From: Pelomyxa schiedti
Taxonomy: Eukaryota > Protista > Evosea
NCBI GenBank assembly: GCA_020536535.1
Contig: JAHLWZ010000636.1
Span: forward strand, 124,001-188,000
Length of the DNA: 64,000 bases
Reading direction: 5' to 3'
In this document: positions 4,860 to 8,631 of the stretch, one piece after another
How the letters are laid out: every line of letters starts with the position of its first letter
How positions within the stretch are numbered: the stretch's first letter is position 1
Made by a program: the position numbers and the translations under genes
The notes under the pieces: generated by a model
Told to the model about the DNA's origin: nothing
The model's input: the letters and a program-made list of their open reading frames with translations, nothing else
The model's database searches: none

Positions 4860-4921
4860 ACGGAAAAACATTGGAAACATAGAAAATTTAAAAAACCTAC
4901 ATCACGGGTTTTCTTTTCTCT

Positions 4922-5830
4922 TCAAACAGTTTTGATGTACTTAGAAACAAAGGTTCGCACACTCTTGGCAAACAGGGAGAGTCTGGCGTGGTTCTTGGGT
5001 GGATGTCTGGGGTCTTTTTCCATTTTGCCAGTTTTGGCTGAAAACCAAGCAAAGTCCACCATCTCCTTCTGATGTCGGGGTATGCCCTGTTTCCGGTTAT
5101 GCTTGCCCATGGCTTTTTTGATGGAGTTTCTGAGCTTGAAATAATGAGTGCCAGGCGGCAAGTTCACAATGAAAACCGGGGTCCTCCGGCCATCTACATT
5201 CCGCCTCACGAGGATATAGGGCTTTTCCTTGTTCAATAAGTCCGCAAACCTGAAGCGGTGTGTGGCTTCCGGTTCCCCAACTTTAAACCTGGACAGTTTG
5301 AATTCCTCCTTTAATTCACGCTTGGCAAGGTTGAACCAGCAAAGCTTTCCTTTCACACGATCACATCGTTCTGCCTTGCCTGCTGCAATATTGTATTCCC
5401 CTTTGTATGTCCCTCCACGTTCCTTTCCTAGCCCCAGCAGAAAGTCTTTTGTAGGAGTAGTAGCAAGCAGGGCAACTCCTGCACCGGCATTTATTTTTGC
5501 CTTGGACCGAAGAGCTCTGCACCACTTATGGGTGCATCCCTTTTCCTTCTTGTGCTTCTTGTCCTTTTTATCCTTTTTGTGCTTGTGCTTGTCCTTGTCC
5601 TTGTGCTTTTTGTCCTTCCTGTCCTTTTCCTTGTCCTTTTTGTCCTTGTCCTTGTGCTTGTGCTTGTGCTTGTGCTTTTTGTCCTTTTTGTCCTTCTTGT
5701 CCTTCTTTTTGTTCTTCTTATGCTTCTTGTCCTTCTCCTTTTTGTTCTTTTTATCTTTCTTTCCCTTATCGTCCTTATCCTTCTCCACTGTAATTTTTTC
5801 ACTTACATTGTCCACCTTGAGCTTCTTTGT
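4922..5830 (-). CDS. Lys/Asp/His-rich low-complexity linker plus Nudix hydrolase domain (single long exon with no usable ATG of its own)
   Basis: ORF 4922-5815 contains NIAAGKAERCD...AKRELKEEFKL, a variant Nudix box GX5[D]...REUXEE. The listed start is GTG and the first in-frame ATG lies downstream of the Nudix box. Confidence 0.75.
   Translation of the reverse strand, partial: TKKLKVDNVSEKITVEKDKDDKGKKDKKNKKEKDKKHKKNKKKDKKDKKDKKHKHKHKHKDKDKKDKEKDRKDKKHKDKDKHKHKKDKKDKKHKKEKGCTHKWCRALRSKAKINAGAGVALLATTPTKDFLLGLGKERGGTYKGEYNIAAGKAERCDRVKGKLCWFNLAKRELKEEFKLSRFKVGEPEATHRFRFADLLNKEKPYILVRRNVDGRRTPVFIVNLPPGTHYFKLRNSIKKAMGKHNRKQGIPRHQKEMVDFAWFSAKTGKMEKDPRHPPKNHARLSLFAKSVRTFVSKYIKTV
5530..5790. repeat. 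Coding hexamer microsatellite (TTGTCC/TTGTGC on + strand) encoding KD/KH repeats
   Basis: Tandem ttgtcc, ttgtgc and ttcttg units, which also generate several shadow ORFs in other frames. Confidence 0.9.
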
Positions 5831-5877
5831 CTTGGTTTTGCTGTTAGTAACAGGGAAACTAGTAGGAAACCTACTAC

Positions 5878-6861
5878 AGGAGGCAGGACTATTCGGTCCC
5901 GTTGCTTTTTATATAAAATAAGATATTCAGGAAGGGCTAAACGATCCCTGAAGATGGCATATTCTCTCTGTGGGAAGTTAATGTAGAGAAATGTATTATT
6001 GTACCTTTCTTTCATGTGGACCCAGTACAGCAGCATCCAAACCAGAAACATGTGGGTGCCTGTGGTGCCTCAGAGAAAAGTTTCTCTTCTTGCCCTTGTT
6101 TTTCGTTGATTGGACTAACGCAACAGAAGAAGCAAACCAAGATTACGCGAAGTATAAACAGGACCTGTACCCCGAGACGTTTCTTAGCATATCCATCAGC
6201 CACAGATACGGACTGTGGAGAGTAAATAACAATGATTCAGAGAGGACACAGTATACCGGTGCTGTATAAATTGCCTTTCCAACTTTATGCTTTGGGGAGG
6301 AAAATTTAACTTTGAAGCCGTTTTTAATGATGGAGCAGACTGGGCAGCGAGCAGAATTACATACCGGTGGTGACGGGTTTTGGTTTTGTTTCTGTATTAC
6401 CGTTATAGTCATAGGTGCTGAGGTCATATACCAGTAAATTACAAATACACCGTGTTCCATGGAACACCCACCTCTTGTGAGCGTGTTCCTTCAATCTTTG
6501 GGCACTCTTAATAAATCGCTCTTTAAGCCTCTGGTTTCTCACCTATTAAGCAAATGCTTCATGTTCAATACGGGTTTGAGGATCATTTTTCAAAAAATTA
6601 AGCAGACTAGAGAGTGCGTTGTACGTTTATTGACTCACCTTGAATACCGCAAGTACTTTCATGTTAGCAGGTGGCCTGTAAGGCCTGTCGTGATGCTTCA
6701 ATTTTGTACGTCGGCGCCATCCACGCTCCAGCTTATTCAGTACCCACTCGAGGTGCCGACCACGAACAAGTGTCAAGTATCTGCAATTTTGTCCCTGTGT
6801 ATTATATTCGTTTCTCTCTTTGTGGCGGTTTCATTTTTTGACTTACGGGTGGGTCCGCCAT
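5878..6861 (-). CDS. PARP-like (ART fold) ADP-ribosyltransferase domain, multi-exon; probably the N-terminal part of a fusion with the downstream Nudix exon
   Basis: Spliced reading MADPP|GQNCRY...MKVLAVFK|VRNQRLKERF...KRWVFHGTR...CNSARCPVCSIIKNGF...VGKAIYTAP|...ADGYAKK...LFILRVIL|...LDAAVLGPHERK|REYAIFRDRLALPEYLILY. The H-Y-E triad pattern of PARP-like ARTs is present. Confidence 0.75.
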
Positions 6862-6993
6862 GTCGTTTGCCAACCGGTTTTTGTTCTGTTGTGGTTTCTA
6901 CGAAGTTACCAACTTGGCAAGGAAAAGGAAGAAAAAAAAACCCGAGCCCGCGCGATGTGTTGTTATTTTTTTTCCACTTTTGTAACTTGGAGG

Positions 6994-8631
6994 TCAAGGG
7001 CTCCCTTTGGAGGTGTAGGACAAACACCACTCAATGGAGGCGGACATCGGCGGTGTTTTGACACGTGACAGCACTTGCCTGACGTCATCCCGTTTCAGTC
7101 CACAGTCTAAAACCAGCCATTTGACCACCTCAATCCTATCGCTCTGACAGGTTTCCAGGAGCAGCTGGTTGCCCTTTACTCTGAGGTCGGCATAGACCAG
7201 TCCACCACATGAAACCAGCCACTTTGCTGTTTCAAGTTGCCCATTGCTGCAGGCCTGGGCCAGCGCCTCACAGTGGTTATATCTGGCAAGTTCTGCTGGT
7301 GTCTGTCCTATCTTACTGGCAACCCATTTAGCGGTCTCTATGTCCGCTCTGGCGCAGGATACAACAAAGGAACCTGGCGCGATTGGCATACCACGTGATG
7401 TGAGCCACTCTGCAATGTCCAGGTGCTTCCTTTCACAGCAAAGTTCTAGGGTGTTGGTTCCGATGCAGTGGGTAAACTGGAATTCCCGCTTCGCTGAGGA
7501 GAGACCGTAACCTGACAGGGATTGCCGCATTGGTAGGTCCCACATGTCAACGACCCACTTTAAGAGGTCCAACCTGCCAAACGCACATAGTCCAGGCAGG
7601 AGTATATCTACAGCGTAGTCTTGTCCAACACGAGCGAAAGTTGCACTAAGCCATTCTGCTATATCCCGATGCCCAAGAAGACAGCTCTGGGCAAAACAAG
7701 AGTTGATCCTATTTGGCCCCAGTACAGTTATGGAATATGTTGTGGCGAGCCACTTGACAAGTTTCAAGTTTCCGGATTTGCAGGCGCACTGCAGCGCATC
7801 ACATTCAAAACAGCAGGCCTGCTGGCTCGTGAGCGAGAACCTAGTTGCAAGCCACTCTACAAGTTCCATTTTGCCTGTTCCACACGCAAGCCTGAAAGCA
7901 TAGCACAGCCTATCACAAAAGTGTTTTGCAGCCAGCCCAAAGGTAGCATCCAGCCACTGTATAGCACCCATATGGCCCCCCATGCAAGCCAACTGCAGTG
8001 CCATTGTGACTCCATCTCCACTCACAGAACACACCCCAGGCCTGTCCAAGAAACTCTCGTCAATATCATCGGAATCACTTGCGGTGGTAGTAGTATTAGC
8101 AGGCGCGGTGGCGGGGTCCGGTTTCACCATCATGGGACGAGCGAACGTGGACAGCCACCAGCGGGCTCCGGCGACGGAGCCTCGGCTGCAGCACAGCGCG
8201 ACGGCGCGGGACGTGGGCTCGCGGCCTATGGCGGGGCACAGGTAGCCCAGCGACTGCAGCGCGGCGTGGAAGGCGGACACGGAGGCGACGTCGCGGAGCA
8301 GCAGGGCGCGGGGGCGCCATGGCGGCGGCAGGGGGCTGCTGCTGCTCCCGGGGACGGGGCTCGGGGGGTCGCCGCCGCTGCTGCAGTAGCGGAACGCGAT
8401 CCAGTGCGAGCAGCGGAAGCACTCGAGGGACGCGCACTCGGCCACGGCGCACAGGGGGCTCCGGCGGCACTGCTCGTCCACAAGGCGCCGCGAGCCCAGA
8501 GCCACGAGCGGGAAAAAGGCCTCGGCCGCGACCACGCAGTCGCGGGAGGACAACAACCGCCATACGTGGCTCCAAACGATGTGGGATAAACGTACAACAT
8601 TATCACCAACTCCTGTCTTTTCGGTCGACAT
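6994..8631 (-). CDS. Ankyrin-repeat protein, intronless
   Basis: 545-aa ORF with repeated ALxxACxxGxLxxxxWL motifs (ALQLACMGGHMGAIQWL, AFRLACGTGKMELVEWL, ALQCACKSGNLKLVKWL, ALAQACSNGQLETAKWL). Confidence 0.85.
   Translation of the reverse strand: MSTEKTGVGDNVVRLSHIVWSHVWRLLSSRDCVVAAEAFFPLVALGSRRLVDEQCRRSPLCAVAECASLECFRCSHWIAFRYCSSGGDPPSPVPGSSSSPLPPPWRPRALLLRDVASVSAFHAALQSLGYLCPAIGREPTSRAVALCCSRGSVAGARWWLSTFARPMMVKPDPATAPANTTTTASDSDDIDESFLDRPGVCSVSGDGVTMALQLACMGGHMGAIQWLDATFGLAAKHFCDRLCYAFRLACGTGKMELVEWLATRFSLTSQQACCFECDALQCACKSGNLKLVKWLATTYSITVLGPNRINSCFAQSCLLGHRDIAEWLSATFARVGQDYAVDILLPGLCAFGRLDLLKWVVDMWDLPMRQSLSGYGLSSAKREFQFTHCIGTNTLELCCERKHLDIAEWLTSRGMPIAPGSFVVSCARADIETAKWVASKIGQTPAELARYNHCEALAQACSNGQLETAKWLVSCGGLVYADLRVKGNQLLLETCQSDRIEVVKWLVLDCGLKRDDVRQVLSRVKTPPMSASIEWCLSYTSKGSP

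Follow-up and report, generated by a model that had tools for sequence, protein, structure and literature searches.

A predicted Pelomyxa schiedti protein that joins a PARP-type domain to a giant-virus-like Nudix domain

Introduction

Does a single nuclear gene of Pelomyxa schiedti, an anaerobic amoeba, encode both a PARP-type ADP-ribosyltransferase (ART) domain and a Nudix domain, and if so, what might the two do together? The question arises from a stretch of 64,000 nucleotides (nt), here called the window (assembly GCA_020536535.1, contig JAHLWZ010000636.1, positions 124,001-188,000; all coordinates below are window positions), in which a gene of eight exons on the minus strand (6861-4922) encodes a product of 527 residues (P0001). 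A preliminary description of this locus had proposed that one polypeptide combines an ART with a Nudix domain, and this architecture is now supported by an exactly matching GenBank gene model, by transcript contigs, by a Nudix exon without a start codon of its own, and by profile and fold evidence. Overall, our analysis points to a compact PARP-type domain, a Lys-rich linker and a Nudix domain of a Cys/His family that is otherwise found in giant viruses, and it leads us to propose, tentatively, that the two domains act as two enzymes.

Results

A predicted PARP-type domain at the N-terminus

A Pfam scan of residues 1-235 of P0001 matched PF00644 at E=1.8e-10 (41.1 bits against a gathering cutoff of 26.7), with an envelope of residues 48-168 over profile positions 21-122 and a domain span of roughly 48-220. 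The match was not seen in a scan of the full-length protein because of the low-complexity linker. The closest solved relatives of this half are tankyrase catalytic domains, in which FHGS aligns with FHGT and AEYVIYRGEQAYPEYLITY with REYAIFRDRLALPEYLILY, so that H85 and E196 are read as the catalytic His and Glu. Y136 lies in GKAIYTAP, which aligns with GKGTYASP of a PARP encoded in a virus-like contig (L005, see below) that is itself confirmed by Pfam, while a phmmer search of residues 76-170 against PDB for the Tyr motif gave chance matches only. By these two sets of alignments the H-Y-E triad is intact, as had been proposed at the outset, and FHGT (6464-6453), GKAIYT (6280-6263) and REYAIF (5967-5950) were found at or near the positions first given for them. 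The N-terminal ~220 residues of P0001 are therefore predicted to be a PARP-type H-Y-E ADP-ribosyltransferase domain.

This domain is compact, having neither a WGR domain nor a helical regulatory domain, and carries a Cys-rich insert of about 22 residues after the His motif. Closest to it in ESM-Atlas are clusters of stand-alone PARP catalytic proteins with ~200-230 residues (score 0.96). Short stand-alone PARPs of this kind, including an Ascomycota ESM-Atlas cluster and the L005 PARP, have the same compact domain without WGR or regulatory domain; none of them is fused to a Nudix domain, and the L005 PARP lacks the 22-residue Cys-rich insert of the Pelomyxa domain. A homologue search with the PARP region of the full protein returned P0001 itself only. 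The linker that follows (residues 226-322) holds 52 Lys, 18 Asp, 9 His and 5 Glu among its 97 residues (54% Lys) and is presumably disordered.

A C-terminal domain of a Cys/His Nudix family

Neither Pfam nor NCBIfam gave a NUDIX match on residues 326-527, and a phmmer search of the C-terminal domain against PDB found no Nudix protein; its sole match there, CHMP2A, was rejected as spurious. Pfam being blind to this domain, its identification had to come from a family profile and from a structure model. When 1.84 billion cluster representatives were searched exhaustively with phmmer, 64 of them proved homologous, mostly stand-alone proteins of 170-215 residues, with E-values between P0001 and family members from 1e-15 to 1e-4. 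Sub-threshold Pfam NUDIX matches (E 0.003-0.05) occur in the homologues P0002, P0043, P0019 and P0003.

In the family alignment an N-terminal C-x-H-x2-C is conserved and a Cys six residues before the box Arg is invariant, a C-x-H-x2-C...C signature that is probably a zinc site. The family motif, G..Y.G.YN.[CA][AG]GK.E..D..C......RELxEEFK[ILV], contains a variant Nudix box (G-x2-E-x2-D-x(n)-C-x6-R-E-L-x-E-E-F-K-[ILV]) and is accompanied by a T-P-[IV]-F strand and a C-terminal E...SSFA. In P0001, residues C324, H326, C329, C389, G360, N372, G376, T442-P443 and E481 fall on conserved positions of alignments A1 and A3, and R396, E397, E400 and E401 (REx2EE) are invariant or at least 90% conserved across 36-42 family members. 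Compared to the canonical GX5EX7REUXEEXGU, the core R-E-L-K-E-E is kept, whereas G-x2-E-x2-D puts an Asp at the canonical box Glu, the spacer is two residues longer in the family (seven in Pelomyxa) and the terminal G-U is replaced by K-[ILV].

Searched against PDB, the family profile matched NUDT15 (E=1.2e-5) and an ADP-ribose pyrophosphatase (E=1.5e-3), and nearly all of the 60 PDB matches listed are Nudix proteins. An AlphaFold model of the domain, built with the family alignment as input, reached a predicted local distance difference test score (pLDDT) of 87 and a predicted template modelling score (pTM) of 0.85; helix 65-77 of the model carries R71/E72/E75/E76 of the Nudix box, and confidence is poor at 83-92. 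With this model, Foldseek returned only Nudix folds from PDB (RppH among them), the top fold matches in AlphaFold-DB, BFVD and ESM-Atlas were all Nudix, and VIA-align gave Z 11.3-13.6 for NUDT7, Dcp2, NrtR with ADP-ribose, Ap4A hydrolases, NadM, the NUDT9-H domain of TRPM2, g5R and NUDT16. The Nudix fold of the C-terminal domain, first proposed from its box, is thus established at the level of the predicted structure. Several viral family members (P0013, P0046, P0058) carry arrays of CxxC zinc-ribbon-like repeats before the Nudix domain, P0012 has proline-rich RSRFE repeats instead, and the N-terminal 205 residues of the long member P0050 gave no meaningful look-alike.

Gene structure and genomic setting

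When the gene model was rebuilt from the sequence, the spliced exons translated exactly to P0001, which is present in GenBank as "hypothetical protein Pelo_8141 / Pelo_12197" (a 100% identical match from a search with the open reading frame of the last exon). The features of the gene are as follows (X4 denotes the transcript contigs described in the next section).

6862-6886, minus strand: 5' untranslated region; mRNA 5' end at 6886, no ATG between 6886 and 6861
6847-6861, minus strand: exon 1 (MADPP), start codon 6861-6859; from the model, with joint 6793/6846 in an X4 contig
6639-6794, minus strand: exon 2 (residues 6-57), N-terminal stretch running into the PARP domain; from the model, both joints in the X4 contig
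6432-6542, minus strand: exon 3 (residues 58-94), FHGT (H85, 6464-6453) and start of the Cys-rich insert; H85 aligned to tankyrase-1 FHGS and to VFHGT of the L005 PARP
6257-6391, minus strand: exon 4 (residues 95-139), Cys cluster C-x4-C-x2-C and GKAIYTAP (Y136); inside the Pfam PARP envelope 48-168
6138-6212, minus strand: exon 5 (residues 140-164), SVSVADGYAK...VLFILRVIL strand; from the model, the L005 PARP alignment and the X4 contig
6005-6094, minus strand: exon 6 (residues 165-194); from the model and the X4 contig
5875-5967, minus strand: exon 7 (residues 195-225), REYAIF (E196), PEYLILY and end of the PARP domain; aligned to AEYVIY of tankyrase-1/2, with the X4 contig covering 5967-5884
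5831-5874, minus strand: intron 7 (44 nt, GTAGGT...CTAAC...CCAAG), joining the PARP part to the linker/Nudix exon; from the annotated model, with bridging inferred
4922-5830, minus strand: exon 8, the last exon
5540-5830, minus strand: Lys-rich linker (residues 226-322); from its composition
4925-5539, minus strand: Nudix domain (residues 323-527); from the family alignment, the profile search against PDB, the AlphaFold2 (AF2) model and fold searches
5536-5519, 5341-5339 and 5320-5300, minus strand: C324-x-H326-x2-C329, C389 and the Nudix-box core R396-E-L-K-E-E-F, respectively; from the family alignment
4922-4924, minus strand: stop codon; a transcript contig stops about 22 nt beyond it, at 4900

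All seven introns are GT-AG and in phase 0. They are very short (52, 96, 40, 44, 43, 37 and 44 nt) and packed into the part that codes for the first 225 residues. Six of them fall within the 675 nt coding for the PARP part and none within the 909-nt last exon, for which the probability at the gene's mean intron rate is 0.018; the genome paper reports 7.43 introns per P. schiedti gene, in models from Augustus that were then refined by PASA and EVM with the help of single-cell transcriptomes (Smart-seq2; PMC8887013). The first in-frame Met of the last exon is residue ~464, after 238 Met-free residues and well past the Nudix box (core RELKEEF at 5320-5300), in agreement with the earlier observation that no in-frame ATG precedes the box. 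The preliminary description had placed the last intron at 5877-5831 (47 nt, IVLPP/TKKLK). Its in-frame join and its acceptor at 5830 hold, and the annotated intron is shorter, at 5874-5831 (44 nt, IVLPPV/TKKLK); both donors, 5875/5874 (GTAGGT) and 5878/5877, keep the frame.

The gene is present on two scaffolds of the assembly, JAHLWZ010000636.1 and JAHLWZ010000836.1, and the two loci (L003, L004) are identical over all 13,940 bases compared. They represent a redundant assembly or a very recent segmental duplication and are not independent evidence; the identical 13.9 kb on two scaffolds also account for the two locus tags of one protein. The genes next to it code for an SMC protein, a HAD-type hydrolase and an ankyrin-repeat protein, so that the setting is that of an ordinary chromosome. 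With these neighbours and seven spliceosomal introns, an integrated viral segment at the locus was rejected. The ankyrin-repeat gene lies upstream on the same strand (6994-8631; open reading frame of 545 residues, annotated protein of 559) and has a GC content of 0.58 (0.70 in 8001-8500), with 0.64 at third codon positions, compared to a GC content of 0.46-0.49 for the PARP-Nudix gene. No paralogue of the PARP or the Nudix domain was found elsewhere in the window.

Transcript evidence at the last junction

The transcript contigs of run X4 come from the same study as the genome, whose Smart-seq2 protocol is described (PMC8887013). A 707-nt contig (depth 27.3) extends from a 5' end at 6886 to a 3' end at 5884, with joints that remove exactly introns 1-6. 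Beyond 6886 it carries 16 loose letters, CCCATGTACTCTGCGT; in reverse complement they match the 3' part of the template-switch oligo used in Smart-seq2, and this remnant places the mRNA start at 6886, leaving a leader of 25 nt before the first ATG. A further contig of 939 nt (depth 7.24) begins with 8 letters that are not collinear with the genome and then continues from 5830 down to 4900, which shows that the acceptor at 5830 is used. The depth bins around the junction fit exon-only coverage (5834-5914, 31 nt x 27.3 / 81 = 10.4; 5753-5833, 78 nt x 7.24 / 81 = 6.97), and X4 has no coverage inside intron 7 (5831-5874). In a second RNA library (X1, filed 2023 under the same study code P1, from a different sample), 164 nt of the last exon are represented.

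Across 5790-5900, where the preliminary description had suggested looking for RNA, the acceptor and the uncovered intron are thus as expected from the fusion, whereas no contig among those listed bridges the junction. Given the annotated donor, the 8 letters would correspond to 5882-5875, leaving a one-base gap (5883) between the two X4 contigs. Such a gap equals 31 missing 31-mers, as a single-base bubble in a k=31 graph would leave, and would favour both contiguity and the annotated donor.

An alternative explanation is that the annotation is an artefact, in which read-through of intron 7 gives a 248-residue PARP with a hydrophobic tail (...VVGFLLVSLLLTAKPRQRSSRWTM*) and the linker/Nudix exon is a separate or non-coding transcript. 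The unbridged 5875/5830 junction, the depth change between the two contigs and the tail-anchor-like hydrophobic stretch that ends the read-through product would fit this explanation, but it has to contend with zero X4 coverage inside 5831-5874 and with a downstream contig that begins exactly at the AG acceptor, its 8 extra letters being non-collinear with the intron. The contig ends at 5884 and, given the annotated donor, 5882, which would fit a one-base bubble, also speak against it, as do a last exon that is Met-free for 170 residues and lies 44 nt from exon 7, and a frame that is kept across the junction in a model refined with PASA/EVM. The support for the annotated junction ...LPPV/TKK... 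is thus only indirect.

Retention of intron 7 would shift the frame and give a PARP-only product of 248 residues with a tail-anchor-like end (VVGFLLVSLLLTA...), which recalls the tail-anchored PARP16; no supporting contig for this form was found among the X4 contigs. Partial products as expected from the two X4 contigs (P0001:1-222 and P0001:224-527) had no exact match in protein look-ups. Within the linker, the Lys-codon repeat (5591-5752) shares words with many other loci, which inflate its depth and give numerous loose ends, and word depth reaches ~2400 in runs X2 and X3, which hold the whole stretch. Since the linker words are drawn from many other loci, KDKK/KHKH low-complexity tracts like those of the linker are common in the P. 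schiedti genome.

Giant-virus affinity of the Nudix half

Both by features and by shape, the nearest ESM-Atlas clusters of the Nudix half are Nucleocytoviricota proteins. The best BFVD match is the Catovirus CTV1_413 NUDIX hydrolase (A0A1V0S9I7; E=3.8e-15, TM score 0.69/0.73), which is itself family member P0023. Together with the NUDIX hydrolases of Terrestrivirus and Hokovirus it is the closest relative by sequence and structure, and the Cys/His signature and the variant box are common to all. The giant-virus proteins are stand-alone (~175-215 residues), uncharacterised and encoded by intron-less genes, while the Pelomyxa copy is fused to a PARP and has a 5-residue insert in its box. Family members from metagenomes lie in dense intron-less contigs with family-B DNA polymerase (with a LAGLIDADG insert), kinase, HNH or GIY-YIG endonucleases, histones or topoisomerase II; a search of IMG/VR for related loci with alignments A1 and A2 gave nothing confirmable. 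As judged from sequence relatedness, the Nudix half belongs to a Cys/His family otherwise found in giant viruses. The distribution of introns, six in the PARP part and none in the last exon, suggests that an intron-rich PARP gene captured a Nudix sequence that was acquired later.

Association of the Nudix family with ADP-ribose-system domains

In a 17-kb virus-like Logan contig (L005, 7322-8528), the genes for a 204-residue PARP and for the 175-residue Nudix family member P0014 lie in this order on one strand, 64 nt apart, which is also the order of the two domains in the Pelomyxa fusion. This PARP matches PF00644 at E=6.8e-16, is 28% identical to the Pelomyxa PARP over 121 residues (pairwise E=5e-9) and has the motifs VFHGT, IIxNGF and GKxxYxxP in common with it. 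The catalytic Glu seems to be missing from it, as NIYVT stands in place of the Pelomyxa REYAIF, and it may be a mono-ART-type variant. The same contig also carries HNH and GIY-YIG endonucleases and a serpin. A second, independent association is P0043 (L001:8001-9647), a 548-residue fusion of a Macro domain (E=1.7e-28) with a Cys/His-Nudix domain in a contig from an anaerobic-digester metagenome. Its neighbours there are a family-B DNA polymerase of more than 2000 residues, with a LAGLIDADG-type insert, and a protein kinase, a giant-virus-like context. A homologue search with alignment A3 headed by P0043, limited to 8000 candidates, returned this protein alone.

Counting Pelomyxa, the Nudix family is linked to ADP-ribose-system domains in three of the ten contexts, which suggests that the pairing is functional. 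The preliminary description had also pointed to a search for other proteins with both domains. None of those longer members among the 64 relatives (from 1.84 billion representatives) that were scanned with Pfam is fused to a PARP.

Discussion

A two-enzyme protein as the preferred reading

The reading that we prefer, with somewhat less than even confidence, is that the Pelomyxa gene encodes a two-enzyme protein in which the PARP domain ADP-ribosylates and the tethered Nudix domain then cuts the pyrophosphate. The PARP domain would transfer ADP-ribose from NAD+ to a target, which may be a protein, a nucleic-acid end or the protein itself. The Nudix domain would then hydrolyse the pyrophosphate of the ADP-ribose, either still attached or released, and the products would be AMP and a phosphoribosyl remnant on the target, or ribose-5-phosphate. 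The mark would be trimmed or converted and not fully erased, and the "eraser" label that had been attached to the Nudix domain is too strong, as phosphoribose would remain on the target after cleavage by a Nudix enzyme. Both activities, the substrate and the coupling of the two domains are inferred, and we hold the sequential action of PARP and then Nudix with moderate confidence. A precedent for the second step is that NUDT16 and RppH cleave protein-bound ADP-ribose in vitro to give phosphoribosyl protein and AMP (PMC4680915).

Several observations weigh against this reading. At the gene level, none of the X4 contigs listed bridges intron 7, and contig depth drops 3.8-fold, from 27.3 to 7.2, across the exon 7/8 junction. 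The single-sequence AF2 model of the PARP part reached a pLDDT of 30.6, so that the PARP fold rests on sequence only, and P0001 has no Pfam NUDIX (PF00293) match at E<=1. The top fold matches of the Nudix half (NUDT7, Dcp2, NrtR, Ap4A hydrolases, NUDT16) span many substrates at similar Z (11.5-13.6), and the substrate specificity of the modelled domain cannot be read from its fold. Classical ADP-ribose pyrophosphatases of the NUDT5/NUDT9 type carry a Pro ~16 residues downstream of the Nudix box; alignment A1 has no conserved Pro column at about this distance, and the segment is variable. Among the nine genomic contexts examined for other family members, seven have neither a PARP nor a Macro partner. 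Finally, the giant-virus Nudix enzymes studied so far are mRNA-decapping enzymes (PMC9503650).

Alternative roles of the Nudix domain

This last point leads to the main rival, which we consider rather unlikely but take most seriously: the fusion would be real and its Nudix domain an RNA 5'-end enzyme that removes m7G (7-methylguanosine) or NAD caps, similar to Dcp2, NUDT16/X29 or the enzymes of poxviruses, African swine fever virus (ASFV) and mimivirus. RNA binding or nucleolar targeting would then fall to the Lys-rich linker, and the substrates of the PARP domain would be RNA-binding proteins or RNA 5'-phosphate ends left by decapping. Dcp2 structures are indeed among the best fold matches (Z 12-13.4), ASFV g5R follows at Z 11.9 (weak by profile, E=0.1), a NUDT16-like cluster was found by the ESM-Atlas feature search (0.93), the linker is 54% Lys, and the family is at home in giant viruses, whose characterised Nudix enzymes decap mRNA (PMC9503650). 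However, an RNA-cap hydrolase leaves the Macro fusion and the PARP neighbour of the family unexplained, and the best matches of the profile, NUDT15 and an ADP-ribose pyrophosphatase, are no decapping enzymes. Neither a decapping Box B helix nor a Dcp2 N-terminal regulatory domain was noticed, although no test was aimed at either.

It is distinctly improbable that, in a real fusion, the Nudix domain serves as an NAD+/ADP-ribose sensor that gates the PARP (like DBC1 or NrtR), or that the PARP is catalytically dead. The Nudix-homology domain of DBC1 gates PARP1, and ligand binding by NrtR gates transcription. NrtR with bound ADP-ribose is a top fold match (Z 13.0), and the off-canonical spacing of the box, the loss of its terminal G-U and the missing Pfam NUDIX match of P0001 would also suit a sensor. 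Inactive Nudix homologues, however, usually lose metal-binding core residues, and R396, E397, E400 and E401 are all present and 90% conserved or invariant in 36-42 members; the PARP H-Y-E triad is intact as well. The intact REx2EE core thus makes a sensor role less likely than RNA-cap hydrolysis. The mis-joined gene model, for which the transcript evidence was weighed above, is very unlikely.

Comparison with known systems

The nearest functional analogy to a two-enzyme Pelomyxa protein is found in the SidE effectors of Legionella, in which a single polypeptide attaches ADP-ribose to a target and afterwards splits the pyrophosphate of this ADP-ribose, with a phosphoribosyl product as the result. 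No homology was found between the two; SidE is a secreted bacterial effector with an R-S-E ART and a phosphodiesterase (PDE) domain, whereas the Pelomyxa protein combines an H-Y-E PARP with a Nudix domain. The macro-PARPs (human PARP9, PARP14 and PARP15) resemble it in that their PARP domain is joined in one chain to an ADP-ribose-binding or -processing module, and macrodomain 1 of PARP14 is reportedly a hydrolase, which would be a precedent for a writer and a remover in one chain. Compared to these proteins, the Pelomyxa protein has a Nudix and not a Macro partner, its PARP domain comes first and the partner last, and it has no WWE, KH or RRM domain. The chemistry expected by analogy would also differ, as a Nudix domain would cut the pyrophosphate and leave phosphoribose while a Macro domain removes the whole ADP-ribose.

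Nudix domains are also fused to NAD- or ADP-ribose-handling modules in NadM, which combines a nicotinamide mononucleotide (NMN) adenylyltransferase with an ADP-ribose pyrophosphatase, and in TRPM2 with its NUDT9-H domain (Z 11.7-12.1); their partners are an adenylyltransferase and an ion channel, respectively, and not an ADP-ribosyltransferase as in Pelomyxa. NUDT16/X29 and RppH have the Nudix fold in common with the Pelomyxa domain (NUDT16 at Z 11.3-11.6) and the activity that we propose for it (PMC4680915), but they are stand-alone proteins with 12-13% identity, lack the C-x-H-x2-C...C signature and are primarily known for RNA decapping.

Novelty and implications

The preliminary description knew of no characterised eukaryotic ART-Nudix fusion, and our literature search for PARP-Nudix, ART-Nudix and Macro-Nudix combinations likewise returned no paper; the word Nudix is absent from a eukaryote-wide PARP survey of 2010 and from a fungal PARP survey of 2026. 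The rarity of the PARP-Nudix fusion is supported but not proven. Already known are P0001 itself, as an unannotated hypothetical protein in GenBank, the macro-PARP fusions and the write-then-cut chemistry of SidE. New are the Nudix partner for a PARP and the giant-virus affinity of that Nudix domain.

A broader and doubtful extension of the two-enzyme reading is that the Pelomyxa protein and its viral relatives form a previously unrecognised "write-then-cut" module, a eukaryotic and giant-virus counterpart of SidE, in which a PARP and a Cys/His-Nudix domain would act in turn on one target and leave a phosphoribosyl mark; in the course of virus-host conflict, exchange with giant viruses would have given the amoeba either its Nudix half or the complete pair.

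The case for a possible physiological role of Nudix cleavage of protein-bound ADP-ribose in eukaryotes has so far rested on the in-vitro activities of NUDT16 and RppH. A natural PARP-Nudix fusion, together with a PARP neighbour and a Macro fusion in giant-virus-like contigs, argues that the coupling was selected more than once, and the finding offers small, expressible proteins with which it can be probed. It also gives a testable role to an uncharacterised family of giant-virus Nudix proteins that is mostly unseen by Pfam, and it presents the Pelomyxa gene as a mosaic, its PARP part rich in introns and its virus-like Nudix part free of them.

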